A stretch of DNA of 64,000 nt from the NCBI GenBank assembly GCA_964199315.1, contig OZ116704.1:15128001-15192000 (forward strand), written 5' to 3'. The translations under genes and the position numbers were made by a program. Under the pieces are notes generated by a model. That model worked only from the letters and a program-made list of their open reading frames with translations. It was not told the origin of the DNA and ran no database searches. Of the stretch, positions 1-53,316 are shown piece after piece; positions within the stretch are counted from its first letter, which is position 1, and the number at the start of each line of letters is the position of its first letter. Origin of the DNA: Orbicella franksi. Its lineage: Eukaryota.

Positions 1-107
1 GAAAGAGTAGCAGTTGTTAATCTGAAGTAACAGGATCCCTCAAGAAGTCACTGGAAATGTCAATATAGTCACAGTATTCCTAATCTTCTTGGTAATGCAC
101 TTTCTAG

Positions 108-3100
108 GCCAGTTGGACTGCAAGGATTGTCCACCAGGCTATTACTGTCCAGCAGGAGATCTTGAACCTGTGGCCTGTCCAAAGGGTACATATAACCCCA
201 TATCTCTTAGGGGATCATTAGGAGAGTGCCGCTCATGTATCTCAGGCATGGCTTGCCCTCGGCCTGGTCTTACTTGGCCACCAGTGAAGTGCGACGCAGG
301 TTATTACTGTCCTGCTGGGTCATCACTACCAAATGAGACCATCCATGCTTGTCCAGCAGGGACATACACTGACTACCATAACTTGACTCATGCTAGAGAA
401 TGCACTGACTGTCCAGGAAGACAGTCATGTGAGGCAGGGACTGGAGGAATACAAAAGCCACCTCAGGAATGTGCTAAAGGTATACATTGTAAATTCCTGA
501 TTTCCTTTCTTTCAAATTAAGTCGTTCCTGACCAACAATTGTAATTTCTTTCTTGTATACAGTATTTGGCAAGAGTCCAGGGGGAGGGGATACTTTACAA
601 AGTTCTATATTGGGAGGCTCTGCCCCGAAGTCCAACCTCATACCCCTTTGTCTACCATTTTGACAGAATAGGTACCCCTTTCATATACCTTTAATTTCAT
701 ACTTTCATAGCTGGCTCATATTATGAATAAACTGCCAAAGGGAGTATTCTTATCTGTAGTGCCTAGTAATTGAAATGATACAGCCATAAGGTGTGTTTGT
801 TCAAAATAAATTATTTTAACCAAAGGCCCTTTGAAATAACAAAATGACAGATTTCCCCACCCTGTCATATACCGGAGCCTGAAAAGAGTTACCCCTTTTG
901 GGCAGAGCCTCCCTGTATAGGCCATTATAGGAAGTACCCCCTCCCCCCGGGGGCAGGGGGTGGGGCAAAAGTCTCTTCGCTACACAGTACAAGGACACTC
1001 AGTAGACTTAAACCACAACCTCCTGATCTGTGCTGCAGTGTTTATTTATACGATACACCTGTCTTCCACAAGCTCAGGTTGAAGTCAGGGTCATTGCTTC
1101 AGATGTAATTTTACTATAAGCTGTAAGAAGTAGTACCAAATTTAGTCAATGCAGGGGATATAAGCAGGGTCTTAGACAGGACAACTGACTGATTGGCCTA
1201 TTAGCCAGGCAAATATGGCTGCGTCTGTTTGTTAGCCTTAGTGGATATTTATATATCTGGCTAATAGTATAAGATAAGAATTTACACCTTTCGATGATAT
1301 TTTTGTTACAAAAAGTTGTGATGTATTTTGATTTTGTAGGTCATTACTGTCCCAGGGGGACCATGAGTCCTACACAGTTCCCATGTGTAGAAGGATCTTG
1401 GACAAACCTCACAAACTTGATTTCACAAGAAGAGTGCTACATATGTCCAAAGGGCTATTTCTGTCTCCGAGGTGTCTCCACACCATCTGGTCTGTGTTTC
1501 ACAGGACATTACTGCCCACGAGGTATGTTCAGAATTCAAAAATTCACCAATCTGCGTACTTGTCGTTGGGTTCTTTAGTAATACCCTTTCTAGAACCAAA
1601 GCAGCTTTCATTTAATCACAGTAACATAGATTGACGTCTTCACTATTGGCTACAACACTTTATTAAGCATTGCAGAAAAGAGTTTTTGAGCATCAATATT
1701 AAAATACAAAAAATAAATAACAGAGATAACTAGAAAAACTATGTACAATTACAATTACAATGACTGTATAACTATGTACAAATTAACTCATTAATTAAAT
1801 GTTTCTTTTAAACTTAAGGATCAAATCCTCGTTTAGATTTTTCCATATTTTTACACCATGAAAATAAAAGGCGTGCTGGCTAGAAGCAATTCTACAAGAT
1901 GGAAGGCTGCCCCTATGTCTTGTTTGTCTGTTGTAGGTAGTAGACTGGGTACAAAATTTGTCTAGTTGCCGTTCTAGTATAGTTATAGTAGTCTGGCCAT
2001 GGATTCCTACATCTGTTAGTTTAGCTATGCAGCAAATTTTCCCTTAATAGAGGTTATCAGGTTCTTTTGATGTTGGTTTTGCTTGTCTAAAAGGTACCAA
2101 ACGAGGCACTGAATTTCCCTGTCCTGCTGGCACATACAACAACAGAACAGGTCTGGAACGAAAAGAAGACTGCGTACCCTGTACAACTGGTCACTATTGT
2201 CCACAGGGCACAACAAATCCAATAGAATGCCCGCGAGGTACTTTCAATGACGAGCTTTCAGCTAAGGTATGAAACACAACTCCCACATGTCTTGTAAATA
2301 CACGAAACATTACCTTGAGGTTTAAGAGTTACTTTGTGAAAAGAATCAAGTTTTGCACTTGAATCAAACATTAAATAGTGTAATCACTGATGTGTCTGAC
2401 TGTGTTGTAATGTTGAACAAGGATATTTTTCCTTTAGAAGAAGAGATACTTCATTCTCTTTAAAAATGCAAGGTAATTTATCTTGCCTTCTGCCATGTAC
2501 AAATGCCTTTAATCTTTAAGTGCGAGTGTTGCAGCTATCATCCTAAGAAAATCAAACCGTGATGTAATTGTCTATTACATCATCTAGTGCTAAAGTGACG
2601 ATACTGTATTTTTACTACCAACCTATCTGAAGAAACATCGTGACTATCTTGAGCTTAGTAGAACATGCTGTTTACAACATCGTGTATTTCAATTTTTTTG
2701 CAGAACCTTGATGGCTGTAAGCAATGTGTTGCTGGGTACTATTGCCCCAATTTGGCAAACTTCGAGCTCCTTGCTTGTGAACTGGCAAATTACTCGGTAA
2801 TGTGTATCTTCAGCTTTGAATTTAACATAGTCATATAATCTTTATGCTTTGAAAACAAGAAAAATCCCAGCATTTCATCAATATAATTTGTGTAATAAAA
2901 CATAGTTCTCTGCCAAAAAAAAGTCTGTATGCTTTGATCAACAAAATACAATTGATTTTCACGTGCTCTTTCTTAGGATTGCACATTTTTCTTTAGACAA
3001 ACTAGGGAGGTGAAGAAGGATTTATTTTATTACTTTTTGCTTACTTTCACAGGGTCCTGGTGCCTCTGAATGCACAACATGTGAGGCAGGGCACTATTGC

Positions 3101-10234: not shown

Positions 10235-10265
<31 letters not shown>

Positions 10266-37200: not shown

Positions 37201-37314
37201 AGATATTTTCAGGTATCAGATGGTTCGTGTGACTGCCTGGCTGGATATGTGTTTTATGGCACGGCAGATAAGAAGATAGAAGAGGGCAATAGTGACCTGG
37301 ATTGTCAGCCTGAG
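108..37314 (+). CDS. Exons 1-37: extracellular Cys-rich repeat array (C-x-x-G-x-Y/F-C-P-x-G, G-T-Y/F-N) with dense N-glycosylation sequons
   Basis: Every exon in this span translates to CPxGxYCPxG / CxxCPAGxYC units, e.g. ORFs 15138-16385 and 23091-26237, typical of the GCC2_GCC3/Ephrin_rec_like repeat family. Many NxS/T sites. Confidence 0.9.
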
Positions 37315-40300
37315 GTTTGGAAACATTTCATTGATTCCAGTTGCTTTATCATTGTTGTGTTCCTATCACATCATTGTGCTATTGTTGTGTCTTTGGGAAA
37401 GATGCTTCACTTTCACAGTGTATTTTTTGATCCATGAAAACAACTTACAATGTTAGTAAATGTTAAATGTTTATAGTGGTCGATGCGCTTAGCTATAACT
37501 AGCTAGTTCTTAGGCGTGCCACTTAAACTGAAAGAAAGGAATATTTCAAGTAAGCATAACAGGCTTAAAATCCTAATTGGCGGGAGGCAGACCAGTTGGC
37601 TATTTACAAGCATGACCGGTGAGCTGAACTAGGGTCGACTGAGAAACAACTCCAGCTTAGTGGTCAGAGCAGGACTTGAACCTGCGACCCCACTCGGCCA
37701 CGCCGCCTCCTTACTTATTAGCATCCAATTAATTTAGAGTATAAGTAGTCCATTGTGAACCAATCACTGAAGCTCTTACTTTCAATAATCACCGGGCTTG
37801 TTACTCACGTCATTCACTAACAATGTTACAAATACTTAATCCGTAGGAGGATCCTCGATGTAGCAACAGCGAAGTTCGCAGAGCATCAGATCGACAGTGT
37901 GTCGACCCAGAAGAGGAAAATCAAAAATGCATTGAACGGTGTGGCAGTGAAAGGGCAACATTTGCTACTGATACAGGTGTCTGTTATTGTCCGTACACTG
38001 AGGACTGTAACGCTACCTGTGAGAGGGACAGACCCAAGTGTTCGTTACAGAGGCTTGCGGAGGGGACGCTAGTGATTCGTTACCTTGACGGCAGTGGAAA
38101 TTCACGGTCTTTTAATATCACACTGGAATTAGGAGTTAACGACCACGACAATGACGAACATGAATGTCAATTCGTCTTCGTTGATTCTCAGCAACCTGTG
38201 TTTGCGTGGGTACCAAAATCTCTGGACGAAGTGTCCGAGCAATTCGAGCCGTCCTCTACGCCGTCGGCGCGTAGACGTCGAAGGGCCGTTGGCGATAACA
38301 CGACAAGTGCGCCGACTACTAACAATGCGATCGCTAACCCAACATTGTGTCTGGCGTACGGTCAAGCATTAACCTTCAAAATCGAAATCAACCCTCTAAA
38401 CCGCACCGCAAGTCACTATCCACGATACCGCAAGAATCACCTATTAAACAAAAACAACGCGTTTGATTACGGCAACTTCAGGCAACTGCATTCTCTTGTA
38501 CTCGACTCGAACAAGACCCTGGATTTCTTCATGCATGTGTTCACGCAAAATGGAACCTTCGTGTTTTACGATAATGCCGACCCCTTCCGAGAGACAATTG
38601 TGACTGTTGTCGAGCGAGGTTCCAGTTGTCCAACTAGCAGCGTTTCACCCACAACTCAGCAAACTTTGGTGACACTTGGAGTCAGTCGCCAAAACGTAAG
38701 TGGTTGTCGCTAGCAGGTCATTGATTAAAGATTGGCAAGATATTACGTGTCTGGAAACATGAATTCAGTACATTCGAAAAGGTCATGGACTTTTGGTGAA
38801 AACAATTTTTTTTCAGGTTTCATTCCCCCGTGTTAAAGGAGCCACGTCACGGTTTTCACATCTTGAAAAGTTTAACCTAAATATTTCACGTTCGTTTTTA
38901 ATACGTGTTAATCTTCTCCATCCTTAGCTTTTATGCTTCATTATCATCTCTTTGGTGTTTTTCTATCTTAGTAAACTATTATTTTCAGGTTTTCTTTAAT
39001 TTAAAGGTAATTTTGTACGTGGCCAAAATGACTCAAAATGCCTTGACTGAGCTCCTTTAAGTAGATCAGTTGTTAAAATACTACACAAGTATTTGATTCT
39101 CGGCTCTGACAAAAGCCAGACTTAATACGACGAAAAGAGTAGGGCACGTAGTTCCCGGTGTTGTGGTCTGGCCTTGTCTGAGCGTATTCACTCACCTGTC
39201 CAGCTGTCATGCAAATTTATTGAAACAAAAGAAAGTGCTTACATAAGAAAAGAGTTGAACTCCCACAGGATTGGTTTGGTACACCAACATGGCCGCCGTT
39301 TCATTGTTTTGGAACACCAATATGGCTGCCATAACGACATGTGCATACGCTCCACAGGGTTAACCTCACTGCACATGTCTTCTTCCCCCCCCCCCCCCCC
39401 CTTGGACAGAATTGTCCAAGGAAAAAATTACTATGACTATGAAACACGCAACTCACGTGAACTCTGTTTTGTAATTCTAGCCAACTAACCTGTCTCCAGA
39501 CTGGCCAGTAATCTGGGGTATGATTGTGTTCATGCTGATATGTATTATTATGCTGGTGATCGCTGTCATCATATGGCGCCCAAAGAGCATTGGACGATAT
39601 CCTATCCGAACACTCAGACCCAAATACAAAGCTCTTGGTGCACCTGTTCCTGTTGTCCCTATACCAGGTACATATTTTGTAACCTCTGGTTTGTCACACA
39701 AGTCAGTTTGATGATAATGGATAATAATGAAACTTTCAACGTTTTGATTGTTACCTGATTATTAATGATGGTAATAGGACTGAGTGGAGTCCAATTCGGT
39801 CTGTAATCATGCGAGTGATTGACAAAATCGAACGACCGCGAAGCGGGAGTCCGATTTGTTAATCACGAGTATGATTACAGACTGAATTGGACGACACGAT
39901 GTACTGTTACCTATAAATCAATCATAACCACGATTACAATTTCCCAAAAAAGTAAAAGTCATTTGAAAAATTGCTTTTAACTGTCATTCTTAAATATGAT
40001 AATTACAAATATGGAGAATAGCTTGAAAAATGGCTGTTAAGTTTCTTTGAAAACAGGCAACGGAGATAAACCTTGACAATTTTACAAAGTCACTCATTTG
40101 AATTGGTTACTATAGTGACTGTAATCAGTGTTGTGATTGGTAGATTTAGTCGAGAAGACTTAGAATGATTGGCTAATGTCCGATTACAGATGTCCGATTA
40201 TAGCCAACTTCCCGATTACACTGTCGGATTTCAGCTTTGCAGATGAATATTAGTGCAAAATACAGTATATGTACCAATCACACCAAAGAAAATTGCAATT

Positions 40301-43300
40301 GTTATGATTAATTGTACACTAGGAATTGATGATCACGTGTATGACCTTGGCCCTCGTGGTGCGCCTGAAGGCTCGTCGTTTGAGTCCCCCAGCGTGAGAT
40401 TTGAGCTGGAGAACTTCAACGTGCGGACATTTTATGACAAACTGGAAGATCAAACGCTGCACGTATCATCGCAGTTGGCCCGTCACCAAGCAGACCTCAG
40501 AGCATTCTACGACAGAATTAGCCAGCAAGCCGAGAAACTGAAAGGAATGCTGGACAGTATGGACGTGTCTGCTCTTATCAAAGCCACGAAAGAAGCGGGA
40601 AGAGCCCGGGAAGGCGAGGTATGAAGTCAAACGTCCTCACTGTAGGTTAATAAGGAATTTACGTAAGCAGGACGGTGACGCCGAGGACAACGTCGATAAA
40701 AACATGAATTTATATTTTACCTACGAATCTTGCAATACTCTAAAGTCATTTACTTTGTTTATCACCGTCAAAACTAACACGAAACTAAATCTGGAACACA
40801 GCGATAAATTTCGAAAAGAAATTTAGCAAATTAGTTGTTGTAGTTCACATTCTCCAGGCAACGCAGAATTTCGTCATTTCACGTTTAGTTTTTTTAGAGG
40901 ACGGCAAAGTAACGTACCAAGAATTATAACGCACGTGCACAGCGATTGTAGTGCTCATTAAGCCGTTTGTTTAGCAACGTTCCCGTTACCGTTGCCTCTA
41001 TGGTGTTTTTTAACTCCTTTATAAGAATTCGCATTTGTTTAGTGCTTCGTTGTCATGATCGACTGTCCGTTTAAATTGTAGGATGCTACTGAAGAGCAGC
41101 CGCAGTCAAGTGGTGTTGGTGAAGCTAGCAAGAGGTATGGCATGACAGCAGGAGGTCAGGTCCGAGAGGAAGAGTTAATGGCAGCTCTTCAGATGCTGCT
41201 TGAGAGAGTGGAAAAGGGACAGTTTGCTATGCCAGGTTAGGCAGTTCATAGCCAAGTGCTTAGAATTAAATTTACTTTAACAACAACAACGAAAACTTTA
41301 TTTCACACCAGAGTTAGAAATTACAATATTGTAAAAGTAAAAACAAAAATGATAGGGGTGCTGGCTACCCGAAATAACCTAAGAATTAATGCTAGGAAGC
41401 CAGTTAAAAGAAATGATATTATACATGTTTAGGTCAGAAACACAAAACAAACAAATAGACACACATCAAAAATAGAAATAAACAAAGTTAAGCTAACTAC
41501 CTGTAGACTAAAGTTCTTACATTACAAAACAGTATTTTTATCCAGGAAGAGCGGTGTACAGATATCCAATAATCTTTAATAAAGTGGTGTGCCATTTTAT
41601 TTTCAAACAAAGACAACGAAGATGATTTTATATCTTCATCAATGGAATTCCATCGTAAGTTTTCGTAAGTAATTGAATGACTTTGGTTTCCTCTTTTGGT
41701 TTTTGTAGCCATAGTGTCAGGCACCAGCGTGTCTGTGCCAGGTGCCGGGATGGTTGTTATGGGAGGGGACAGTACTACAGCCACCACGACTTTCACTCAA
41801 CAAACAGCTGGGTACCCTGTGGTGGAGGTGCACGCAGGCGAGGCTGCTGGGGCACAGTGGCACATCAAAGGAACGAGTGACGTCAGCGAGTTCTTGCGTA
41901 AGATGAATGCAGAGCGCATGCACCTTGAGCAACAGATTGGACGGGAAGAGGAGACCGCTGTACACAAACTACTTAAAGAACAGGTAATGCTTAAACAGAC
42001 AAAGTAGGTTTTCTTCAAAATTTGAATTCTGAGCGTGCGTTCTTTACCTACACACGAATCTGAAGGCTTTATTTTGCCTAAACTTTACCACTTTTGATTG
42101 ACCTAGATTTAGCTTAGCACTGGGACGTAGAAGTGCTCACAGTATTGGTATTGGGCACACGTTAAGGATTGACGAAATTATGCCATTTCTGGTTCAGAAA
42201 TCCGTGTTACGTTAATCGCGTGAGTCATCAAAGGAGCACAGATTATTCCTTGCAAAATTCATATTGTTTGGTTTAAGTTATCTTGCGAGACTCGGTGTGA
42301 ATCTTTGCAAAGGAAAGAATTTTCTCAGCTATAATATTATACCATGTGTAGCTTCCAGTAAAACAGTCACGACTAAATGAACTCCCTGACATTTTATTAC
42401 AAGTGACTTTTGAACTTGGATGGTATTGTTATGAAACACTGGTTAAGATGCTGATATCAAGCGTGTTTGAATTTGCAGGAAGAGAAGCGGTCAGAGGAGA
42501 TGAAGAGATTAGCCGAGAACTTAGCGGACAAACTCTCAGGTGATCTGAGCGAGGATGAAACGAGAGCAGTCATGGAAGACCATGAAAGACAAGTGGCGCA
42601 ATTAGAAGGCCTGTTAGCATCCGAAAAAGAGAAACAAATGGCAGCACTGAGAGATAAACTGAGACGACGAAGAGAAGAAAAAGAAGCCGCCATGTTAAGG
42701 AAACAGAAAGAAGAGGTACAGACATGATATGAGTGAATCCCCGTCCACACTACGTCGGAGGAATTTCAAAACGCAGCTTTATTTCTACGGTTAGGCCTAC
42801 CGTCCACACTAATCCGTCACGAAAACGGAGCTTTTCGAAAACGCTCTTCAAACCCGAGAAAACTGAAAACGCCTGCTTTGCGTTTTAATGTGGACAGAAG
42901 ACATTTTGAAATCGTTGAGGTTATCAGAAATGACCGGATATTGTTGCGTTCTCAAATTTCTCCGGCGTAATTTGGACGGGAAACATTTGGTACGTTTTCG
43001 GAGTGAAACCCCCGTTTTGAAATTCCTCCAGCGTAGTTTGGACGCTGCCTTAATGTTCTCAAGAATAATGATGATATGCACCAAATTGCAAATCTTGGAA
43101 CAATTTATCCACTCATTGTTCAACAGACAACACACAATAAGTCATCAATTCGAATTAAAAAGGAGTGCAAAACTTACAGTAAAGAGAATGCATGATCTTC
43201 TTAATTCTGTGTACTTTTTCAACAGGCCGAAAAGTCCAATATCCGTCTGGACGATGTTGAACCGCTGGCCAGCATAGATACAGTACTGAAGACTCAAGAA

Positions 43301-46300
43301 AGTGTCCAAGATGTTATTGTTCAGGAAGAGTCTATTGGGCATGCGCGAGCAGAGGAGCAGCAGTCCAATGAACAGGCAGAAGTGTATCGTCGCCAGCTTG
43401 GCGACAAGTTCTGTGCTATGGTGGTAAGAGTCATTGCAAAGAAATCCCCGGGGTGGGGTTACTCCCAGAAAAATCGGGTGAGGGTGAGGGGTGTGTGGCC
43501 TGCTTCCCAAAACCCTTACCCTATTTAAGACCAAAGTCTGCGATTTTCCCTGCCCTATTTATGACCTGACCCTTAAATCAATATCCTGTTTTAGATCTGC
43601 CTTATAATAATTCCTTAGTTTAGACCAATATTAAAGGTAATGTTTATGTGCTTTTATTAAGTAGGATAGCTTCTTCTAAAAAAAACATACCCAATTCAAG
43701 ACTAGAGTACAACAACCATACCCTATTCGAGACCAAAATGGCTAAAATCGATACCCTGTTTAGGACCAAACGGCTTACAAACCATACCCGCCTTGGGGGC
43801 AACACATGCCTATATAGCCCATATGAGGGATTACCCTTCCGGGATCAAATCAAATGCTAAGTTTATGATCGTCCAAAACGTCCTTTAGAGTTAGATTTTA
43901 AATGGTTGTTGACATGACTGTCTTGTCAGTTGCCAAATGTAAAATTCTTATTTCTGATGCAGGTTGTTTACATTATTTTAAAACAGTCACAATAACGAAT
44001 AACTGATCTGATAAAAGACCTGTTTTTCACCAGGATGACCTTGTCACTTCCGGGTCTCTGTATGCTGATCAAGCAGAACAAATCAAACGCGAACAAATGG
44101 AATTGGAAGAAAAGATGTCACGCGATCTAGCACAACAGCGTGCGCAACAGACAGCACTTATTAAGGAAAAGCTCGCGCAGAGAAAGAGAGAACAAATGAA
44201 GAAACTGAGAGAACAACAGGAGATGGAGAAAGCTAAGGTAAACCTGTGAATTTCGCCATGCGTCACGCACATTTCACGCACAGCAGCGGCTTGTGTTACT
44301 TACCTTGTCACACAACTCTTGATTTAGGTCACTGGTGAGAGCGGTGACGTAACAGCACTAAACCTGTGAAATCCACCACATGTCACGCATCTCACGCATC
44401 TCACGCACACCAGCGGTTACTTACCTTGTCACGTAACTCTTGATTTAGGTCATTAGTGAGGGCGGTGACGTCACAGCACTAATAAAGCAGCATAAACAGG
44501 AAGTTACTGCGCTGGAAGCAAGTTTTGAGGCGGAAGAGACGCGTCACACTGCAGAGATTAACAAGAAACTTGACGAGACGCACATGGAGAACGTGCAACA
44601 AGCCCACAGAGCCCTGCTTGAAAAGGTGAGCTGGAAACGAAACGCTTTGACTCCACCATTATGTCTCTTATATTCCGGGCTAAGCGAAATGCCAATGTCA
44701 GCTTTAAATTATTCCTGCGATATTACGCTTGATGAAACCGTTATGTAAAGGTTTTTAAAAGTCACGGTTTGCGCATCTGGAAACGTTTATCCTAGATTTG
44801 TAATCCGTGTTAATCTTCTCCATCGATAACCATCCTTGTTCCTTCATGGTTTATTATTTTCTCTTTGACATTTTTCTATCTTTGTAAACTACTATTTTCA
44901 GGTTTCCTTGAATTTAAAGGTAATTTTGTCTGTGGTCATAATAACTCAAAGTACCGTGATTGGACTCCTCTAACTTTTCTGTATTGTCTATTGAAGGTTA
45001 CAAGAGACAATTTGGACGCGGTACTTCAACAGCAGATTATGGATCAGTTCAGGAAAGATAACGAGGCGCTGCTCGGACACCTTGAAGAACGAAAACTGAA
45101 GTCTCTTGAAGACACCAAGGTAACAAAAAATGTATAATAGTCGATAAAAAATAAAATTGAATTCTCTTGTGCAAACAAGCTCTGACAAGCTAGGATACAC
45201 TACTTTAAGCTGCAGTGAACTTTCGTTACTTGAATAACAGCAGCCGCGTAGCAGGCATTCATTTCCAAAAGCACGCGAAGGAAACGAATTAAAATGCGAG
45301 CGAGTTCGAAAAAAATAACGAGTAAGGCAAAACATAAATGCCCTTCCTCCCCAACCCCTCCCCCTTCACCTCCTTTTTTTGCTCACCCCCTCCCCACTTC
45401 TCCCTTTTTTTGCTAACCCCAGGTGCGCTCATTTCCTCGATCTTCCCGCCTGGAAAATGGAAAGGAAACGTCTGCTGCGCAAGCTAAAAACAACATTTCT
45501 CTTTGTTTTAGTTGTTATAAGTAAAGCGGGGTGCAATATATGTCCTCTTTGTTGGATTTTCCAGAACACGGCATATCAATGCTAGGCTTCATAACAGCAT
45601 TATTAAATGACATACTTCTCTCACTAACCGACGAGAATTCGCTGATTTAAGTCTGGTTGTTTTTCTCTTCCTTACAGGCCAAACTTGCTGCTCGTCGCGC
45701 TCGTCGTCAAGAAGAGGCGCGCCGTCAAGCAGAGGAGACAGCTGCCCAGCGGATATTGGAAGAACAGAGCCAGGCCATCGCGGCCAACAAACCAGTGGAC
45801 GCAGATCACGTCATAGTACCTGAGGTCATTTTACCTCGTGAAACATCAGAAGAGCAGGTTCGAATAAACTTGTAATTTACGTCTGGTTATAGGAAAATCG
45901 TTGCCCACGTCATTGTTAACATTTTTCCTCATTAACATACGCGCATAGAAAGCATCATGCAAGACACGAATTGACTACAAACATTTAAAGAGCTGCTGAA
46001 ACTTAGTTATTGGTGAATTTTTGACTCTTTGGGTGTAACCTTCGAGGAGAAACTGGCTTTCAAAAACTGCAAAATTTCTGAGTGGCAAAATCGCTAATCC
46101 TCATACATTTTTTGTGAAATTTTGAGTTTTTAAACTCGCATAGCACAAGAAGTATTCAATACATCGGGCTCAAATTCCTTGGGACAGTTAATCCTGTTGT
46201 GTCCTTTCAACATTCATAATTTATGTTTTTGTAGCTCCATCAGAAACTGTATCGCTTAGGCAAGTATTGAAAACAAAGAGTCTCTCAGGCTAACTGGTTT

Positions 46301-49300
46301 TCTACAAGCTGGTTATAACAACTAACTTGACTTGACCTGTATTGACATTTTGCAAAATGTTTTCTGATGTTTTCTAGTGTTTGTTTGTTTGTTTTTCTTT
46401 CCATCTTCAGGCATTGCGAAACGAACAGGAACGCACATTGGCTGACATGCGTGACAGACACGAACAAGACACTCACAAGATGGACGAAAAACTTGAAAGA
46501 GAAGCGGTGGCGGAAGAAGCGCAAGCCACGGAACTGCTCGAAGCTGACAAAGAACGGAAACTAAGAGAATTGAAGGACAGGCATGCTGCGGAATTAGCTG
46601 CTCGCTCGAAAGATATGTCACCTGAGGAAGTACAACAGGTATTTGAGGAACGTTGACTTTTGTTTTCTACAAAAATTTTCAAATGTTGTTGTTTATAGTG
46701 GTCAATGCGCTTAGCTACACCTAGCTAGTTCACGAGTATGCCGCTTAAACTGAAAGGAACATATATATCAACTTAACATAATAGGCTTAAAAATCCCAAC
46801 TGGCGGGAGGCAGACCAGTTGGCTATTTGCAAGCATGACCGAGGAGTTGAACTAGGGTCTACGGAGAAACAACTCCAGCTAAGTGGTCAGAGCTGGACTT
46901 GAACCCGCGACCTCCAGTGGCGCACTAACTACTCGGCCACGCTGCCGCCCTATAAAGTGGTGATAGGGAAATGACTGTCGGTTTTTCGGAACAATACCTA
47001 GACTTCCCCTAGTCAGTAGAGCATTGCGTATTCGCATAGAATTCCAGGTATTAACGTGGAATAAAACATCAAAAGCTAGCAGTTTGTGTTCCAGAGAGTC
47101 AGTCAGTCAGCATCTTAGGCTGATATTGTCGAGATCATTTGTGATGTTTGATATGGTCTGCAGCTTTTGGCAGCCCACCAACAAGAACTGGACGAAATAA
47201 TGGAAAAGATGGACGTAGAAAAGCAACGGCAACAGGCTAATTTACACCAGAAACTGCTGGAAAGAAAGAAACGAAGACAAGAGGCGCAACAACGAAAACA
47301 AGAACGAGAGATGGCCAAGGAACTGCTGGAGCAAAAGAAAGAACTTGCTGAAGTGCGCACACAACATGTAAGTAACTTTATGATTAGTAACTGAGAACTG
47401 GAACAAGTACGAGTAGTCGTTTTTTTATAAATAGGGAGTATAAGAAAACCAAGACGGCAACGGGAACGTCGCTAAACAAAAGGTTTAACGAGCAGAACAA
47501 TGGCTGTGCACGTGCGTGCCGTTATAATTCTTGGTACATTTCTTTGCCGTCCTCTGCACAACAACGCCATGAAATGACCAAGTTCTAAGTTTTCTGGAGA
47601 ACGTGAACGACGACGGCTAATTTTTCAAGTTTCTATTTCAAATTTATCGCTGTGTTCCAGATGCAGTTTCGTGATAGTTTTGACAGTGACAGTGAAACAA
47701 AATGACTATAGAGTATCGCGAGATTCATAGGTAAAATATAAATTGATTTTGTAATCGACGTTGTCCTCGGCGTCGCCATCTTGCTTACTTAAACTTCCTA
47801 TTTGGTTATACCTCATTTGGTTAACAATTTCTAAACTCATAAGAAGTTGAAGCTGTTCGTCTCTTCTTGTAGTTATGGTATGGTAGCAGTGTATTTACTA
47901 TAGGTTAGCGCGCATTTATACTGAACGAGAACTGAAGGCACTATATGGCACTGCTATTTGGTACAACCTCATTCACGCAATCTATCTTTACGGAAGAAAT
48001 AAGATCAAACGGAAGGACGTATTCCTTATATGTACCTACATATTTGATTCACAGGTGAAGGAAGCTGAAAAGCAAGCCATGATTGAAGGAATTCGGGAAA
48101 ATGGCTCGGAAGCTGCAGAGTTTGTTATTCGAAAGGTAACAGTCTGACGTAATCACTTTCTTGTTATTGTGGACAGCGTCGCTTTGTACATGGCGAAATA
48201 TTGCTAGTTTTTTGTAGAATTAGTGTTTCTTAAAAGATAATTCTTGTTTCGAGAGCAAGTTAGTTGGTGCAACAACGACATATTAATTTTCCTAGTAAAG
48301 GAGACGGCCAATTTATCAGCGTCTTACCTTTAGTCTCCCTCAAAAACAACAACAACAAACCTTTGTTTAGAAATTACATAAACACACAAGGACATTTATG
48401 TATACTTGCCACATATAACGCTGAGACGCTTTTCGAACTGGGAGCGAGCTGAAAAATTAGATTAATAAAAGATAACAAAGAGGATGCAATGAAAAGTAGA
48501 TATCAAAAACTAACAAATTACAACACAATACGCGCAGTACTTACTTGGTCTTCAATAGGTCTGTAGGTCTAGGAACAGATCGAACATTCATCCCGGTTTA
48601 AACCCGTTTCAATCTCCTTTTCGGGTGATGGTTGACCTCTTCCTGGCCTTCGAGAATTGTCAGTGTTTTTCTTAATTAACTTCCACATCGCTCTTAGGAA
48701 GTAAGACACGCGAGGATTAGGCTGTTGAAAAGCTCATCTTGCTACGTTTGAATTACCTATAAAATCAATAAAGTAAATCTTGTTCTACACGAGACTTTTC
48801 TGAGATTAAAATGTTTATAAAATGCAACGTTTTGGGCAGTTTTACTACTTTTCTTCAGGCACCGTAGTTCCAGCTCAATATGGCCGACTTTGTTGAGACT
48901 TTGAAAACTCCCGAGTAGAACAGGATTTCCTTTATTTATTTTATATGTAAACATGAGAGGTTCTGAAAGTTTCAGAAAAACTATTTAAATTAGCGTTTTG
49001 CACTTTAATCAGCTCAAAGGACAGCTAACTCTGTAGCTTTTGATAAGATCAGCAAACCAAAAAATTTTTTTTTGTTTGTTTGTTTGTTTTTCGGCGATAG
49101 GTTCTCGAAAAACGACACAGTCAAGAGCTGAAAGACTTAGAGCGCATGTTCCAGGAAGAACGTAAGGTGGCAGTTGACGAAGCACTGGCCAAGATGGAAG
49201 AAAGACACGCTCAAGAAAGCGATGAACTGCGTGCTCAAAACGAAAAAGAGTTGAAAGAACTTGAAAAGCAACGGCTTAGTCCTGAAGAGTTGCAGCAAAG

Positions 49301-52300
49301 ACGAGCGCAGTTACTGAATCAACAACAGTTACGGCAAAGTGCGCTGGACAGGAAACACGCTGAACAACGAAAACAGATCGAACATGGCGTCCAGTCCGAT
49401 TGGGAAGTGCGTTTTGCTCGCGCTAAGTTGGAACTCAAGGAAAAGCATTATCAGGTTCGTTTATTGGTATTGATAATTATAGTTTCTATCACACTTCAGG
49501 GCCGAGTTGTTCAAAGCCCGATTAAGCTAACCCAGGATTAGCGCCGGACAATTTTAATTTCAGTTTTATAACTTTTCGGTGAGGTTTTCTGTTTATATTG
49601 TTTGTCCTTCAGTTTTGAGCTTGGGTAATCTCAAAATACACAAAGCACCAAAAAATTAGCGTTAACCGGCTCTCGAACAACCAGCCCCAGATGTTTAATT
49701 GCAGCCGTATTTTAGGTTGATGTTTGATTTGGAGGAAATCCTATCTGAGGATGTCTATCTGATGTCTATTTGTCATTCTTTTCCTCTCCCTCCCGTCCCC
49801 TCCGGTAGGAGTATGCAGATGCCTTAAATGAGTTGACTCCAGAGCAAGCAGAAGAACACAGGCGATCAGTTGAAAAGGCTCTGGCAGCCGCCAGGGAACT
49901 GGAAATAGTCAAGCAGAAATTAGATGAACAGCGACTGGAGAACGAGCAAAAACTCAAACAAGAAAATGAAGGTTTGTTGGTTTCACTAAAGTTCACGATG
50001 TTACGGTATAATAATAACGTAATACTATCCTAAAGATTTCATGTCAACAATATTCATTAATGGTGTGGGCTGGGTAGAACCATTTTGTCAGTGTATTCAA
50101 TTGGTAGTCTTAAAAGTTAAAGTCCCTTAAATCTAGTCTAACCACAGACCTTCTGTTTTTTCTTGAGGTCGTCGAGATCACAAGTTATATTAACCGCAGG
50201 GAATTAGAAAAAGCCTGAACGCAAGAGGGGTGGCGCTGGGGAATGCGGACAAAGACCCGTTTCGCGGCCGCTCTCGCGCTCTGTACTCGCTCTCGATCTC
50301 ACGCCTTCGCATCGCTCGCGCGCTCAAAAAAAATTAATCGTGGCAACAAATAAACGTCTGTAAACAGACTATATATGAAACAGTAGAAACGTTTAAAACT
50401 GTTCTAACCCATGTATCATTTTCACTTCAGCATTTGAAGCAGAACAGCAACAAAAGTTGGAGGAAGAACTTCGGGCGTTCGACAAACAACTGGAACAAGA
50501 AGCAGAGGAAGAACAGAAAAAGAACGAGAAGGCAATCTTGGCTTTGAATGCTCGAAAAGAAGCACTGCTGAAGGAAAAGAAAACTAAAGTCAAACAAGAA
50601 ATTGATAAAATGAGCAAGCAAGGCGCTTCTAAGGAAGATCAAGAAGCCATCTTGAAAGAGCACAGCAAAGACCTGGCGAAACTCATGAACAAGATGGATG
50701 CAGACAGAATGAGAATGCAGAGCTCGCTAGAAGAGCGTCTGAAGAAGAGACGCGATGCGAAGCGGCAGAGCAAAGTTGATGAGCTGAAGAATCGAAATGA
50801 AGAAGAGAAAAGAGAATTTGAAGAAAAAGTACAGTCGGAGCGTGATCGAGTGCAAGCTGAAGAGGTCATCGCTTTGAAAGAGAGCATCCATGTTGATAAC
50901 CTCGTCGCCGCTACGATCGAATCCGAAGCTACTCCACCACCTGTGCCCCAGGCCCGATTGATGCCGGACAGTTATCGATTAGCAGCGCCATTGAGCGAGG
51001 GTGAATTGGCGTCCTTGCTGCTATCGTCACCGCTGTACCAGAAGATCGAAGGCATCAAATCTTTGTTGAGTGGTGGAGCTGGGAAGGGAGGCCAGTTCAA
51101 TGCTCCAGGTAAGGATGACGGGTGCAAAGCTAATGAAAGCTTGGCTGGGACTGTTGTCAGTTAAACAGTCATGACACAGCATTACGTATGGAGAAGTATG
51201 GATTGCTTAAATTAATAGGGGTGCAGAGGGCGGAGAGGAGGTATTGTTCATTGAGATTGGTGTTTAAAAAACACCTCCTTGAAAAGTCTTAGTAAGTTTG
51301 AAAACGAGTCCTCATGCAAAAACTTTCGTATGAAAATGAGTTTGATTCGCAAGAAAATGAACCTGTCGGGGGAACAACTCGGAGAAGGCCCACGGTAAGA
51401 ATCATTATTTTGGTTACAGCGATGAGCTTTTTAGCACATTTAATTTATTATGGTAACGTTTGTCTAATAATTCGTTCTTGTTTCTCAGCACCTGGTGAAG
51501 GCTACATTGACATCAAAGACGACACGCTGTGGGGAAGAGACGACGAACTCGTCCCAGTTGACCTGAACACGCTGCCTGCTCGGTCGTTCGTCACATACAA
51601 GTTTGGTTCGTTCATTGTCGACCTGCTCGCTGTTCATTGCCACCACTTACCAGTCACGTTGCTACTCGCTGACAAACTGCCACCCAACACTCACCTGGAG
51701 AGGAACGCTTACCGCAACTCCTTCTTCTATGATGCTAACAACCGCATCTTGTACGTACGCGCCGAGCGAATGGACAACGTTGGAGAGTTTGTCTTGGTTC
51801 TTGTCCACTGCCTGTCACACATCGCTTGTGGAGACTTGCGTGACGACTCACATCCGGGCTTTTTAAAAGAGTTCCATCACGCCCTAGCCGTGATGTGCGA
51901 TGACTTGTTCTTTGCGCGTTACAGGCGTTCTTCTGCGCTTGCGCGTACGCTGTCGTCACTTCCGGCGAAGGATGATTTGGAGAGCGCCAGTCGAATGCTG
52001 CTGGAGTCAGTGTTTGGTGATGCGCATACGGAGGCTGACAAGTCCAACGTGGTAGAAGGACTCTTAGACGCCAAGCTTTTACGCGGTGCAAACAAAGATG
52101 GCGTACATTTTACACATGAGGGAATTGTGGAGCGCTTATCCAAGTACAGTAACTTTGCCGTGGAGTCCAAGCTGCGATCTTTCTTGGGTGATGTGGAAGA
52201 CAAGGCTTCTCACGCTCGACTACAAGGCACCGAGGAGTTTATTGATAAACGACTTACTGAACTGCAAGGACCACAAGCTAAGGACAGACCGGTGTCACGT

Positions 52301-53316
52301 TACGCTCAGTCACGCGGTAACCTGATGTCGCGTGGTGTGTCACGTCAAGTGTCCCGTGCCCAAGCTTCGTCACGCACTGCCACTAGTTTGCCAATCTCTG
52401 GAAAAGCTGCTAGCCAGCCTAAAGAAGACGAAGACCTCTACTTCACTTTCTTGCAGGTATGTTCACGTTTTTTTTTTTGGTCGATTCAGTCTTATTAAAA
52501 CATAGGTGAGCTATCCCTTAGTGTGTTTTTTTTTTCACCGTAGGTGAGTTTACGCTCATACTTTCGGTAAGGGACGGACCATCTTTTGGGGGGGGGTTGG
52601 GGGGGGGGAGGGTTATTGGGCAATTTTCTCGGGGAATGAAATATTTTTCTCATCTTTAGGTTGTGCATGAGTTTTTTTTTTCGGTGGGCAATGGCTTGTG
52701 CAATAATTTTTTTAAAGTCAAACAGAGAACCTAGATAGTAGTAAGCACTTGTTGTTTTTGTTTTTTGGCTTCCCTTACACGATTATATTTTCAGCAGTGT
52801 TTGTTGTGCAAGGATTTTTTTGGAAATTGCCCAATCCCCTACCCCACCCCCCTCAAAAAGATTTGGTACTTGTATTAACTTATTTTACGATCTCTAATCC
52901 AGGTTCAAGTTGATGACATGCAAGACACTGTGGACAGCTTAAATCAGGAGTTTGCTCAGCTTTCCAGGCAATCTTTAGATGTCACCACTAACCTGCGAGA
53001 ACTGGAACAGGAACTGCTGGCTCAAACTGACCTCTTCAGGGAGTCAGCGGAGGGCAGCACGGAGCATGCACAGCACAAGAATGCCGTTCGACAGACCACT
53101 ACCAAAATAACGACCGCAAAGGCTTCGCTGGAATCCATCAACTTACAGAAGAGCAACTGTTTGGAGCGACTAAATTTGTTCAAGAAAAGACTGGAAGAAA
53201 AACAAGCACAGCTGGAACAACATGCCAGCAAGCCAGAGAGTGAACGAAAACAGCAAGCAGAGAGAAAATTACAGTCTGCCATGGGAAAAACACAGAAGAA
53301 GAAAACAAAGAAATGA
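108..53316 (+). CDS. Giant Cys-rich (GCC2/GCC3, ephrin-receptor-like repeat) single-pass membrane protein with long coiled-coil cytoplasmic tail; 5'-incomplete; 56 exons, about 6,780 aa in window
   Basis: Hand-spliced GT-AG exons, all phases compatible: 108-479,1340-1522,2094-2266,2704-2796,3053-3250,3729-3851,4915-5097,6833-7027,7584-7735,8261-8429,8646-8780,9543-9695,11773-12119,12880-13045,13751-14084,15169-16368,16818-17203,18131-18326,18887-19511,20092-20345,20746-21324,21555-21741,22109-22323,23017-23178,23266-26229,27082-27201,27459-27947,28479-28718,29111-29287,30072-30425,30989-31594,32127-32609,32798-33045,33697-34093,34703-35170,35761-36204,36719-37314,37847-38695,39481-39667,40323-40618,41082-41235,41709-41983,42479-42715,43226-43423,44034-44237,44449-44625,44997-45119,45678-45857,46411-46638,47164-47367,48055-48135,49101-49454,49809-49971,50431-51108,51489-52456,52903-53316 (TGA). 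Total 20,336 nt = 2 + 6,778 codons. The donor at 30425/30426 (gtggaa) is the weakest boundary. Confidence 0.88.
577..950. mobile_element. Non-autonomous DNA element (MITE) with G-run/C-run termini; related copy at about 43445-43845
   Basis: Starts ccagggggaggggatact and ends agtaccccctccccccgg; non-coding. Confidence 0.5.
3939..3973. repeat. 35 bp perfect palindrome flanked by 7 bp direct repeat CTTAAAC
   Basis: catagttagtggagggg-t-cccctccactaactatg; cttaaac at 3932-3938 and 3974-3980. Confidence 0.85.
4199..4375. mobile_element. Tc1/mariner (pogo-like) MITE
   Basis: TA|CAGTGGAATCCCGA ... TCGGGATTCTACTG|TA: terminal inverted repeats and TA duplication. Confidence 0.8.
4600..4885 (-). mobile_element. 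tRNA-derived CORE-like SINE, copy 1
   Basis: Near-identical to 6530-6790; the minus strand has a tRNA-like head (GGTTCAAG B-box). Confidence 0.7.
5440..5597. mobile_element. Nested TA-flanked MITE
   Basis: tacagttgaacc ... ggtccgactgta; internal ttcgaaataac repeats resemble the 4199 element. Confidence 0.65.
5960..6313. mobile_element. Solo LTR (Gypsy or BEL/Pao type)
   Basis: Termini TGCTACGA ... TCGTAACA (TG..CA inverted); 5 bp target duplication GTGTC at 5955-5959 and 6314-6318. Confidence 0.75.
6530..6790 (-). mobile_element. tRNA-derived CORE-like SINE, copy 2
   Basis: Minus strand reads gtgttcttgggcaagacactttactcgcacaatgcctctctccacccaggtgtataaatggg, resembling the CORE domain. Confidence 0.75.
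7085..7320 (+). repeat. Interspersed repeat family A (second copy at about 33385-33665)
   Basis: Shared catctcatatccaacaagc ... atgatggctaagcca.tgaaaactctt ... ttattcaatgatccagttttt. Confidence 0.75.
7895..8220 (+). repeat. Interspersed repeat family B (copies at about 36298-36620 and 45965-46262)
   Basis: Three aligned copies: aattgact..a..catttaaagagc ... cttgggacagtt.atc ... gtagctc.atcagaaactgtat. Confidence 0.8.
10078..10315. mobile_element. tRNA-derived SINE-like element with inverted tRNA head (10113-10184, minus)
   Basis: Minus strand GGCTTCATAGCTCAGTTGGTAGAGC...GGTTCGATTCCCATTAAAGCC (A and B boxes); anticodon stem unpaired. Confidence 0.7.
10372..10545. mobile_element. MITE (reverse copy at about 39180-39352)
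   Basis: TIR tagaacgttttcac ... gtgaaaacgctct; second copy in opposite orientation. Confidence 0.7.
10575..11260 (+). mobile_element. Penelope-like retroelement 3' fragment: GIY-YIG endonuclease with Cys-rich linker, plus hammerhead-like motif
   Basis: ORF 10637-11080 (CRRTRCQTC...VVYCISC..C..LYIGETGRRLRERFSEHLRSI...VAEHFN); CTGAAGA-agggc-tta-gcct-GAAAC at 11189-11212. Confidence 0.85.
14456..14696. mobile_element. Foldback MITE with long inverted arms
   Basis: aataggtcattttacagttgtctgctcggtgacctggcctttgaatggcagcgaggc...gatacagacctcactgctttt is mirrored by aaaagcagtgaggtctgtatc...ctgtaaaatggtctatt. Confidence 0.85.
15169..16368 (+). CDS. Exon 16 (1,200 nt), Cys-rich repeats
   Basis: Acceptor ttacatag|GC and donor TATG|gtaag; lies within ORF 15138-16385; phase 1-1. 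Confidence 0.9.
18595..18790 (-). mobile_element. Degenerate tRNA-derived SINE
   Basis: Plus strand gggatttgaacccatgacctc is the reverse complement of a B-box-containing tRNA 3' half. Confidence 0.45.
22379..22565. mobile_element. MITE family (copies at 54002-54190 and truncated at about 51300-51375)
   Basis: TIR aataggcca ... tggcctatt; internal tatgaaa.tgagtttgatttgcatga.aat is shared by all copies. Confidence 0.8.
23266..26229 (+). CDS. Exon 25 (2,964 nt), largest exon, Cys-rich repeats
   Basis: Within ORF 23091-26237; acceptor gtacatag|GT and donor GCAG|gtatct. Confidence 0.9.
26740..26910. mobile_element. Palindromic MITE-like element
   Basis: tcgtacctttttggtacacttcg ... cgaagcgtaccaaaaaaggtacga. 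Confidence 0.6.
29312..29588. mobile_element. MITE
   Basis: TIR tagagcggttttc ... gaaaaccgctcta. Confidence 0.75.
30575..30865 (+). mobile_element. Penelope-like 3' remnant (GIY-YIG C-terminus plus mutated hammerhead)
   Basis: Translates SAVGEHCQLTEHSVD...KFLATESSTFKRRIRQAIEI...SLNRDSGF; CTGATGA-agt-tcgg-ttgag-ccga-tc-AAAA at 30828-30856. Confidence 0.7.
37465..37715 (-). mobile_element. tRNA-derived SINE family C (copies at about 46690-46950 and 61037-61130)
   Basis: Shared aggcttaaaa.tcc.aa.tggcgg.aggcagaccagttggct.ttt.caagcatgacc...gaactagggtc; minus-strand tRNA-like head with GGTTCAAGT. Confidence 0.8.
37847..38695 (+). CDS. Exon 38: end of Cys-rich region, RRRRR furin-type site, and non-repetitive juxtamembrane domain (NPTLCL...SHYPRYRKNHLLN...FDYGNFRQL...GTFVFYD)
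   Basis: In frame with ORF 38072-38713; acceptor ccgtag|GAG and donor AAC|gtaag. Confidence 0.85.
38834..39060. mobile_element. TTAA-flanked non-autonomous DNA element (Kolobok/piggyBac-like); copies at about 28118-28340 and 44755-44975
   Basis: TTAA|AGGAGC ... GCTCCT|TTAA; three aligned copies. Confidence 0.7.
39481..39667 (+). CDS. Exon 39: transmembrane helix VIWGMIVFMLICIIMLVIAVIIW (39508-39576) followed by basic RPKSIGRY
   Basis: 23 hydrophobic residues followed by positive charges (positive-inside rule); acceptor aattctag|CCA and donor CCAG|gtacat. Confidence 0.9.
39770..40240. repeat. Probable interspersed repeat rich in ccgatt/aatcgg motifs
   Basis: Starts taataggactgagtggagtccaattcggtctgtaatcat with an internal inverted copy atgattacagactgaattggac; single copy in window. 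Confidence 0.45.
40323..51108 (+). CDS. Exons 40-54: cytoplasmic tail, E/K/Q/R-rich coiled coil
   Basis: Spliced ORFs such as 42467-42727, 47167-47394, 49146-49541 and 50457-51164 show heptad-like charged helices; phases compatible. Confidence 0.85.
40646..41010. mobile_element. PIF/Harbinger-like MITE (inverse copy at about 47433-47800)
   Basis: Two copies in opposite orientation sharing gacaacgtcga, cacagcgataaattt and ccaagaattataacg; termini tagggagt ... aacttccta. Confidence 0.7.
41275..41695 (-). mobile_element. LINE (CR1/L2-like) 3' tail fragment
   Basis: Minus strand encodes WNSIDEDIKSSSLSLFENK...HFIKDY (RT C-terminus-like) followed by a (TTG)n tail; similar tails at about 1690-2010 and 29645-29790. 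Confidence 0.55.
42740..43052. mobile_element. Harbinger-like MITE (second copy at about 55225-55505, inside Shox intron 2)
   Basis: ccgtccacactacg ... cgtagtttggacg termini; shared gctttatttctacggtt.ggcct..cgtccacactaatc.gtcacgaaaacg. Confidence 0.75.
44240..44481 (+). repeat. Tandem duplication (about 121 bp) of an intron plus the first 33 nt of exon 46
   Basis: aaacctgtgaa...cttaccttgtcac..aactcttgatttag|gtca.t.gtgag.gcggtgacgt.acagcacta occurs twice. Confidence 0.9.
49498..49690. mobile_element. MITE
   Basis: cagggccgagttgttcaaag ... ctctcgaacaaccagccc, degenerate TIRs. Confidence 0.6.
51489..52456 (+). CDS. Exon 55: globular cytoplasmic domain with HCLSH (degenerate HExxH-like) motif, then an S/R-rich linker
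   Basis: Within ORF 51314-52498; acceptor tttctcag|CA and donor CAG|gtatg. Confidence 0.85.
52903..53316 (+). CDS. Terminal exon 56: coiled coil ending in polybasic KTQKKKTKK*
   Basis: Acceptor ctaatccag|GTT, in frame with ORF 52918-53316; TGA stop; AATAAA downstream. Confidence 0.85.
   Translation, partial: VQVDDMQDTVDSLNQEFAQLSRQSLDVTTNLRELEQELLAQTDLFRESAEGSTEHAQHKNAVRQTTTKITTAKASLESINLQKSNCLERLNLFKKRLEEKQAQLEQHASKPESERKQQAERKLQSAMGKTQKKKTKK

Follow-up and report, generated by a model that had tools for sequence, protein, structure and literature searches.

A giant single-pass membrane protein gene

Here we report that a stretch of the genome of the stony coral Orbicella franksi (contig OZ116704.1, positions 15,128,001 to 15,192,000; hereafter the window, 64,000 nt of AT-rich eukaryotic DNA with 0 Ns) carries, from 108 to 53316 on its + strand, an expressed gene for a giant single-pass type I membrane protein of at least 6,800 residues. 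Coordinates are window positions on the + strand unless stated otherwise, and negative values lie upstream of the window. A scan for open reading frames (ORFs) placed nearly all of those of at least 100 aa on the + strand between 89 and 53316, and open frame as a whole is strongly biased to this strand from 26 to 53316. The predicted protein consists of about 4,900 aa of repeats, a 283-aa juxtamembrane (JM) domain, one transmembrane (TM) helix, an LE-FNVRTFYDKLEDQ segment, about 900 aa of charged helix, a 340-aa tail domain (TD) and a helical C-terminus. Its N-terminus lies outside the window, in keeping with a preliminary description of this DNA, and repeat-type exons were found upstream. The principal features are as follows.

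108..37314 (+): Ephrin_rec_like (GCC2/GCC3) repeat array, ~4,830-4,940 aa in the window; PF07699 matches, Cys content, tblastn with homologue repeats
37847..38695 (+): JM domain exon, 283 aa, a small 8-Cys module followed by beta-sandwich(es); homologues, structure model
38279..38293 (+): polybasic proprotein-convertase (furin-type) site, RRRRR/AVG; sequence, with the loop predicted disordered
39481..39667 (+): TM exon, with TM helix VIWGMIVFMLICIIMLVIAVIIW at 39508-39576 and then the basic stretch RPKSIGRYPIRTLRPKYK, type I topology; frame translation, RNA at both junctions
40323..40618 (+): conserved cytoplasmic segment with LENFNVRTFYDKLEDQ (FNVRTFYDKLEDQ) at 40412-40453, predicted long helices; RNA junctions
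41082-41235, 41709-41983, 42479-42715, 43226-43423 (+): RNA-verified tail exons; 17-36 raw reads per GT..AG joint
42479..50940 (+): charged, Pro/Gly-poor helical spacer, ~870-900 aa (model aa 5531-6400); composition, homologues
50941..52350 (+): TD, ~340 aa, spanning the intron 51109-51488; crinoid and hemichordate proteins align through the junction at 47-53% identity
52903..53316 (+): last exon, helical C-terminal segment and stop TGA at 53314-53316; ORF, 25-34% identity to homologues

Exons were joined by dynamic programming from GT/AG sites and consensus scores, with codon composition modelled separately for the ectodomain and for the tail. Two compositions were adopted because a single model retrained on its own output dropped the tail exons, whose codon composition differs. 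The result was a single chain over 108-53316 with the TGA at its end as sole stop. After correction against RNA the full splice model holds 59 exons and 6,932 aa; a conservative model, from which five doubtful pieces were removed, holds 54 exons and 6,816 aa in an unbroken frame, with GT-AG borders at 53/53 introns and a median intron length of 553 nt. None of the five had homologue support; four are 2704-2796, 10688-10924, 18704-18757 and 31657-31675, and the fifth is a 69-nt 'intron' inside open frame (23179-23247). The single spliced frame proposed earlier for this interval, then put at 56 exons and about 6,780 aa, is thereby confirmed. Identity to four homologues is 22-63% per exon, and the alignments are nearly gap-free from 11773 on, all tail exons included. 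The exons of the 54-exon model are listed here.

Exons 1-9 (+): 108-488, 1340-1522, 2061-2266, 3053-3250, 3729-3851, 4915-5097, 6833-7027, 7584-7735, 8261-8429
Exons 10-18 (+): 8646-8780, 9543-9695, 11773-12119, 12880-13045, 13751-14084, 15169-16368, 16818-17203, 18131-18326, 18887-19511
Exons 19-27 (+): 20092-20345, 20746-21324, 21555-21741, 22109-22323, 23017-26229, 27082-27201, 27459-27947, 28479-28718, 29111-29287
Exons 28-36 (+): 30072-30425, 30989-31594, 32106-32609, 32798-33045, 33697-34093, 34703-35199, 35730-36204, 36719-37314, 37847-38695
Exons 37-45 (+): 39481-39667, 40323-40618, 41082-41235, 41709-41983, 42479-42715, 43226-43423, 44034-44237, 44449-44625, 44997-45119
Exons 46-54 (+): 45678-45857, 46411-46638, 47164-47367, 48055-48135, 49101-49454, 49809-49971, 50431-51108, 51489-52456, 52903-53316

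Ectodomain, TM helix and tail on one transcript

Coral RNA runs contain 0.45-0.50 of the sampled words of 36559-40700, in agreement with the predicted exon share there. When two contig sets and two polyA raw-read runs were mapped on 37700-43690, six consecutive GT..AG joints were recovered (38695/39481, 39667/40323, 40618/41082, 41235/41709, 41983/42479 and 42715/43226), each of them crossed by 15-36 raw polyA reads in run X23 as well as by contigs of two other runs. One contig of 5,828 nt (X3) includes 4,648 nt of ectodomain sequence from farther upstream and continues through the TM exon, another of 1,488 nt (X1) spans 37845 to past 41080, and a third of 3,092 nt (X3) starts at 41080 and reaches 2,084 nt beyond 43424. 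Together the bridging contigs and the six junctions place ectodomain, TM helix and tail on one mRNA, as had been supposed, and colinear homologues agree. We looked for transcripts that end before 39481, or start after it, without junction reads, and saw the opposite. The reads also amended the first model in two places: its exons 39204-39340 (repeat-derived) and 39618-39667 were replaced by the TM exon 39481-39667, and its acceptor at 41715, 6 nt off, by the one at 41709.

Exon depth on 37700-43690 is ~8-19x in X23 and none in X21, although both are polyA runs with the same species label, which points to sample-, tissue- or stage-specific expression. In the first part of the window (1-10000), 0.30-0.46 of the sampled words occur in the RNA runs, more than the exon share of 0.22 that the model predicts; tblastn with homologues found no missed coding exons in this interval, and the surplus therefore probably reflects repeats within introns or unspliced RNA. 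Introns at 38900-39300, 39700-39900 and 42700-42900 show RNA word depth in the thousands, inverted or back-joined reads and many loose ends. These stretches look like high-copy transcribed repeat elements, one of which, at 39204-39340, had mimicked an exon.

The cysteine-rich ectodomain and its upstream extent

Cysteine makes up 10-11% of the first ~5,000 aa and is near zero thereafter, and the ectodomain contains 527 Cys, 62 CxxCxxG motifs and 137 N-x-S/T sequons. Pfam PF07699 (Ephrin_rec_like, formerly GCC2_GCC3) matches 6/7 large ectodomain exons tested, above the gathering cut-off of 23.1 in exons 15138-16382 (25.3 bits) and 36613-37434 (24.1 bits) and at 17.7-18.9 bits in four further ones. 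The family is also carried by the homologues, and the repeat type named in the preliminary description is borne out. Beyond PF07699, Pfam searches with the JM exon, the tail exons and eight homologues returned nothing.

The same repeat type, in a large extracellular array, occurs in Chlamydomonas MST1, the apicomplexan cysteine-repeat modular proteins (CRMPs) and Babesia BboGDP (see PMC9815656 and PMC9843837 for surface proteins with GCC2/GCC3 repeats). As far as Pfam and the literature show, the JM domain, the LEDFxVRT segment and the zincin-like tail described below are not found in these proteins. The CRMPs are multi-pass; in the coral in-window model a region of that kind was not found, and there is one hydrophobic helix only, the RNA-confirmed TM exon included.

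Tblastn with homologues traced GCC2/GCC3-type exons on the + strand up to -43,629 (G000:C7, ~15,084,370-15,127,600, to -377), adding at least 3,289 aa, and found no repeat exons from -90,000 to -43,630 and none on the minus strand. Between ~-32,600 and -21,100 lie ~10 near-identical units of ~1 kb, each made of a Cys-rich exon of ~290-350 nt (FLPCDFSCPNKTQPVECSAGSYAATGS...CQPCPKGAFCP...) and an intron, which represent a recent tandem expansion of an exon array. One frame can be kept through a chain of 114 exons (10,340 aa), though a chainer always finds some chain, and the whole may be one gene of ~98 kb encoding a protein of ~10,300 aa.

The chances are almost as good that the upstream exons form a separate secreted GCC2/GCC3 gene, and that the gene described here has its 5' end no more than a few kb from the window, with a product of ~7,000-7,500 aa rather than ~10,300. 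The homologue of the tunicate Clavelina (P0178), which has a plausible signal peptide, has an ectodomain of ~5,350 aa, nearer to the in-window length, and the exons from -17.9 kb to -5.6 kb match homologues more weakly than the others. On the side of a single gene, the repeat exons form an unbroken series on one strand between -43.6 kb and the window; no JM domain, TM helix, tail or opposite-strand gene was seen among them, and the recent duplication of ~10 exon units explains the extra length. The 114-exon chain is a weak argument in the same direction.

A juxtamembrane domain with a polybasic loop

The JM domain has no Pfam match and no PDB sequence match. Its structure was predicted with AlphaFold2 (AF2) from a 143-row alignment headed by a compact lungfish homologue (P0036:88-905), row P0177 being left out; the mean predicted local distance difference test (pLDDT) score of this model is 75, with values >90 for the JM and tail domains. 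Models were compared by VIA-align with 48,161 PDB representatives and by Foldseek with the PDB and AlphaFold DB. Residues 108-282 of the JM model match cupredoxins, with pseudoazurin 1pmy_A at Z 8.6 (root-mean-square deviation 2.7 over 97 aa) and plastocyanin 7zqe_M at Z 7.9. Foldseek gave weak matches to cupredoxins, ephrins and multicopper oxidases, among them plastocyanins at probability 0.9 but E>0.05.

The membrane-proximal part of the domain thus models as a cupredoxin-like sandwich. It has a Greek-key beta-sandwich in common with cupredoxins (pseudoazurin, plastocyanin) and with ephrins, of which ephrin-A5 and ephrin-A2 are among the weak Foldseek matches, and it differs from cupredoxins in an inserted helix, a disordered cleavage loop within the sandwich and the absence of sequence similarity. 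Type 1 copper ligands were not found: the family consensus has no Cys-x-His-x-Met loop and no conserved His or Met after C261. Twelve positions are invariant (C46, C48, C54, C58, C168, P192, Y194, D207, F211, F228, G236 and C261), and C168 and C261 look like a disulfide pair.

The polybasic site, a furin-type site already suspected, falls in a loop (model residues 138-156, pLDDT <50) with beta structure on both sides and lies 20-odd residues ahead of an invariant NPxxCL. A strict R-x-[KR]-R stands at the equivalent place in 60/108 aligned homologue rows, protists included, and ambulacrarians have RRRLL in its stead. The coral protein presents R-x-[KR]-R in an exposed loop, as convertase substrates do, and cleavage itself is predicted. 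Since the loop comes after the first two strands of the sandwich (model 109-122) and the alignments with cupredoxins start at 108-109, cleavage would split one sandwich; from this we infer a non-covalent two-chain receptor. No inter-chain disulfide is obvious, because the conserved C168 and C261 would both lie on the C-terminal fragment. A complex prediction with the coral JM halves (1-149 and 150-283), folded without the family alignment, gave a score of 0.00 and low pLDDT and speaks neither for nor against two chains.

Cleavage inside a folded JM domain, with fragments that stay together non-covalently and can be separated by force, is the arrangement of Notch (S1/HD), SEA-domain mucins and GAIN-domain adhesion G protein-coupled receptors, which the coral protein would resemble. 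Its cupredoxin-like fold differs from the Notch HD, SEA and GAIN folds. Its cut is predicted to be made by a convertase at the polybasic loop and not by autoproteolysis, and in that respect only it resembles Notch S1.

The cytoplasmic tail

The TM exon is 42-53% identical to its homologues, and the tail that follows the TM helix measures 1,674 aa, against 1,670 aa in the preliminary description, which had also placed a TM helix here. The conserved cytoplasmic segment (45-53% identity to deuterostome homologues) has the family consensus LExFxVxxxxDKLxDQ, and its helices are modelled at residues 394-456 with pLDDT 81-91. In the spacer, E+K+R+Q+L amount to 0.53-0.63 (0.58 overall) and P+G to 0.02, and 35-53% of residues are charged. 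It is colinear and gap-free with invertebrate homologues (23-70% identity per exon), and self-comparison found no internal repeats in it. No dominant 3.5-residue peak appears over aa 5531-6400, where the best a/d occupancy (0.41-0.60) is like that of non-coil controls. With this charge and no clear heptad signal, the coiled coil proposed earlier is not established; the spacer may be a coiled coil, a single ER/K helix or partly each. The C-terminal segment shows a weak 3.5-residue peak, and AATAAA occurs past the stop codon, at 53494 and 53550.

The coral TD contains the motif VHCLSHIACGDLRDDSHPGFLKEFH, with HCLSH at 51806-51820 followed by GDLRDD and FLKEFH. PDB sequence searches with the TD and with a TD profile gave nothing meaningful, and neither Pfam nor the PDB gave a zincin match at sequence level; a single-sequence AlphaFold prediction of the tail exon reached pLDDT 36 and was not used. 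In the lungfish-headed model, VIA-align matches residues 627-807, mostly within 628-762, to >20 zincin chains at Z 5.1-7.8, and on residues 632-751 it gives chains of the zincin fold exclusively: selecase (7.8), Wss1 (7.7 and 6.5), abylysin (7.6), AQ_1354/YbeY (7.4/6.6/6.4), jannalysin (7.0), SPRTN (7.0), aminopeptidase N catalytic domains (~6) and HtpX (5.9). The best of these matches cover ~80-110 residues. In AlphaFold DB, Foldseek returned MPN_634/MPN_635 at E<1e-3, plus HtpX and GCNA-1.

The TD therefore models as a minimal zincin fold, an assignment that rests on the coherence of the match list and on HxxxH lying on the aligned helix, the Z values being middling by the calibration of the tool. 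With minimal zincins (selecase/minigluzincins, the SprT-like Wss1/SPRTN, YbeY and HtpX) it has a predicted topology in common, namely a helix, three strands, the HxxxH helix and a following helix; it differs in that the catalytic Glu of HExxH is missing from all 67 aligned TD sequences (0/67), the residue after the first His being A, C, T, V or S. Both His are kept in 12/12 invertebrate rows and in 20/21 and 19/21 protist or metagenome rows, and outside vertebrates a DD pair is as well conserved as the His. Because the two His and the DD are conserved there, metal binding may persist. The His pair is largely lost in vertebrates (10/33 and 13/33 rows). Candidates for a third ligand, by sequence position and not by geometry, are the DD, 8-9 residues past the second His, and the E-F-H/Y of the helix that follows.

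Judging from these alignments, the Glu-less state is ancient and family-wide, and not a coral loss. The label 'pseudo-enzyme' previously given to the tail is apt for a zincin-like fold without the catalytic Glu; it fits less well with a Glu-less state that the whole family shares and with His and DD that are kept outside vertebrates.

A widespread and uncharacterized family

A search with the JM exon retrieved 460 clusters at E<=1e-3 among 1.84 billion representatives; the taxa named here are those among the matches listed, and do not amount to a phylogenetic profile. Invertebrate members include the hemichordate Glandiceps (6,496 aa), crinoids, Asterias, Diadema, Branchiostoma, the tunicate Clavelina (7,082 aa), Owenia and Dreissena. 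Vertebrate members come from many fish ('si:ch211-286b4.4', 'SCO-spondin'), sharks, lungfish, frogs, reptiles and birds, and mammalian ones from bats, carnivores, sheep, a lemur, and Peromyscus and Cricetulus ('predicted gene 9195'). Protist members were found in the oomycete Phytophthora (up to 7,529 aa), the labyrinthulid Hondaea, Cantina and the heterolobosean Percolomonas. No human or ape member is among the 90 matches listed. All named members are 'uncharacterized' or carry misleading automatic names; 'zonadhesin-like', 'SCO-spondin' and 'MEGF6' are misnomers, since they are driven by the Cys-rich repeats.

Orthology is supported by the order of elements, a GCC2/GCC3 array followed by the JM domain, the TM helix and LEDFxVRTxYDKLEDQ. 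The Glandiceps protein aligns over residues 83-6496 with model residues 7-6892 at 37% identity, and the Asterias, Branchiostoma and Antedon proteins likewise align over their whole lengths. All five tail pieces are present in eight invertebrate homologues, and the invertebrate homologues together represent seven phyla or subphyla. The coral and all invertebrate homologues have the JM domain, the TM helix with the cytoplasmic segment, a charged helix of ~870-930 aa, the TD and the C-terminal helix; the charged helix is present in invertebrates and protists. The alignments thus describe an old, uncharacterized eukaryotic family that reaches from protists to mammals. In the literature we found no description of it and no characterised animal protein with the whole architecture, as the preliminary description had also concluded; Gm9195 and si:ch211-286b4.4 appear in gene lists only. 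A feature search of the ESM Atlas gave weak leads only, below 0.85.

Vertebrate si:ch211-286b4.4 and rodent Gm9195 are true homologues that share the array, the JM domain, the TM helix and LEDFxVRTxYDKLEDQ; they lack the ~900-aa charged helix, and in vertebrates HxxxH has decayed. The fish proteins have the JM domain, TM helix and cytoplasmic segment, a linker of ~100 aa and then the TD at 22-31% identity; in the Betta 'si:ch211-286b4.4' (P0182) the JM domain is 32% and the TM and cytoplasmic segment 41% identical to the coral. The fish homology given in the preliminary description thus holds, and its statement that these proteins end soon after the LEDFNVRT segment does not. The TD is present in the coral, in 12 invertebrate and 21 protist rows and in 33 rows from fish, amphibians and reptiles. 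It was not detected with the TD profile in 22 mammalian sequences, though their JM domains score ~1e-100; the 'predicted gene 9195' proteins, reached through a bat homologue, match the JM profile at E ~1e-96 to 1e-104.

Two mammalian gene models (P0241 and P0243) fuse a family member to ATP12A, one of them also to Tudor/Agenet domains (RNF17-like), which suggests that the mammalian orthologue adjoins ATP12A. A coral transcript from Logan (P0161, 2,397 aa) was compared with 37847-53316; identity is 82-91% in the TM/cytoplasmic segment, helix and TD and 47-48% in the JM domain. The outside of the protein seems to evolve much faster than the inside.

Proposed mechanism and function

In the mechanism that we propose, the repeats make up a long extracellular rod that is glycosylated and stiffened by disulfides. 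The disordered loop between strands of the membrane-proximal cupredoxin-like sandwich would be cut by a proprotein convertase, and the mature protein would then consist of two chains held non-covalently, by the same logic as Notch S1/HD, SEA and GAIN. A pull on the rod, or binding to it, could release the rod and alter the state of the remaining stub. Inside the cell the charged helix would hold the TD at a long distance from the membrane, some 100 nm if the spacer is helical throughout. The TD, with H-x-x-x-H and DD and no catalytic Glu, would carry a probable metal site and is most likely a binding or scaffold module, not a peptidase. We lean towards a surface filament for adhesion or mechanosensing, cut by a convertase and anchored to a cytoplasmic scaffold through the TD.

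Several observations weigh against this proposal. Cleavage, two-chain association and force sensitivity are read from a model of the lungfish homologue and not of the coral protein. Fold similarity is of middling strength (Z 7-8.6; Foldseek PDB E 0.03-0.2), the cupredoxin core begins only past the loop in some alignments (amicyanin, 164-257), and the strict R-x-[KR]-R is confined to the 60/108 homologues mentioned above. The spacer is not demonstrably a coiled coil. The function of the TD is not universal, because its His pair decays in vertebrates and no TD was detected in mammals, and the HxxxH site of YbeY can be catalytic without Glu. No experiment or localisation was found in the literature for any member of the family.

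A bolder version, which we regard as doubtful, would make the family a class of giant two-chain surface receptors as old as the last eukaryotic common ancestor (LECA). The convertase-split cupredoxin-like JM domain would be a switch for release by force or ligand. A charged single helix or coiled coil would carry the Glu-less, metal-binding zincin ~100 nm into the cell, where this domain would serve for signalling or anchoring; in the coral the polypeptide would reach maybe 10,000 aa over ~98 kb.

It is unlikely, though worth weighing, that the protein is a filament or anchor of the ciliary or flagellar surface, its rod decorating cilia or sperm flagella like a mastigoneme and its tail tied to axonemal or periciliary structures. 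The protist members known by name (Phytophthora, Hondaea, Cantina and Percolomonas) belong to lineages with flagella and no fungal or plant member is among the matches listed by name, but a taxon range of this kind falls short of a phylogenetic profile. In one preprint zebrafish si:ch211-286b4.4 is higher in testis than in ovary and listed beside ift74 (bioRxiv 10.1101/650218), yet higher expression in testis can have many reasons. These two observations are the sole hints found for the localisation to cilia, sperm flagella or cnidocytes that the preliminary description had considered plausible. The literature yielded no localisation or proteomic data, and the strong difference in expression between X23 and X21 is not interpretable as to cell type.

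Less probable still is an active metal-dependent TD, a YbeY-like hydrolase or a peptidase with another general base, which would make the protein a receptor-enzyme and not a scaffold. Conservation of H-x-x-x-H and DD from protists to invertebrates speaks for activity, as do the YbeY-type chains among the best structural matches (Z 6.4-7.4), whose HxxxH also lacks Glu. Against it stand the small or apolar residue after the first His in 67/67 sequences, the vertebrates that lose one or both His and yet keep the domain, and a third ligand that cannot be assigned with confidence.

That ectodomain and tail are two neighbouring genes fused by an artefact of gene modelling, as the sharp change in composition at ~aa 5,000 and the mis-spliced TM region of the first automatic model might suggest, is very improbable given the six consecutive RNA junctions, the contigs that bridge ectodomain to tail and the identical order in independently annotated proteins of many phyla.

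The family, with proteins of 5,000-10,000 residues, is conserved in heterolobosean and stramenopile protists as well as in corals, echinoderms, fish and rodents, and yet its two signature domains (JM and TD) have no Pfam model and no paper on it was found, a considerable gap. The domain-level anatomy given here, a cupredoxin-like JM domain with a polybasic loop and a Glu-less zincin-like TD, appears to be new. It turns an uncharacterized LOC gene into testable statements: a convertase cut within a sandwich, a metal-type site without a catalytic base, and losses by lineage, which in vertebrates concern first the long helix and then the TD site. With orthologues in zebrafish (si:ch211-286b4.4) and mouse (Gm9195), such statements lend themselves readily to genetic tests. 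To coral biology the locus adds a very large surface protein with sample-specific expression, a recent exon-array expansion and a nearby paralogue, as would be expected of a molecule that meets the outside world.

Paralogue and neighbouring genes

A paralogue with repeats, JM domain, charged helix and TD lies on the + strand at G000:C7:15305224-15343848, 177-216 kb past the window start. Its identity to the present gene is 30-37% in the C-terminal subdomain of the JM domain and 49% in the TD.

Within the window, the minus-strand neighbour is a homeobox gene with ORFs at 55463-55840 (-) and 57447-57827 (-) and a Pfam Homeodomain match at 8.8e-15. The homeobox ORF ends in ...RVQV, a common place for the homeodomain intron, and the ORF upstream of it has an eh1-like FSIAEIL motif. 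Farther along, a 148-aa ORF at 60456-60902 (-), with no Pfam match at E<=0.01, contains NVVYKVSYADCPWSYVGETGRCFETRKK, which resembles the GIY-YIG nuclease motif of a Penelope-like element.

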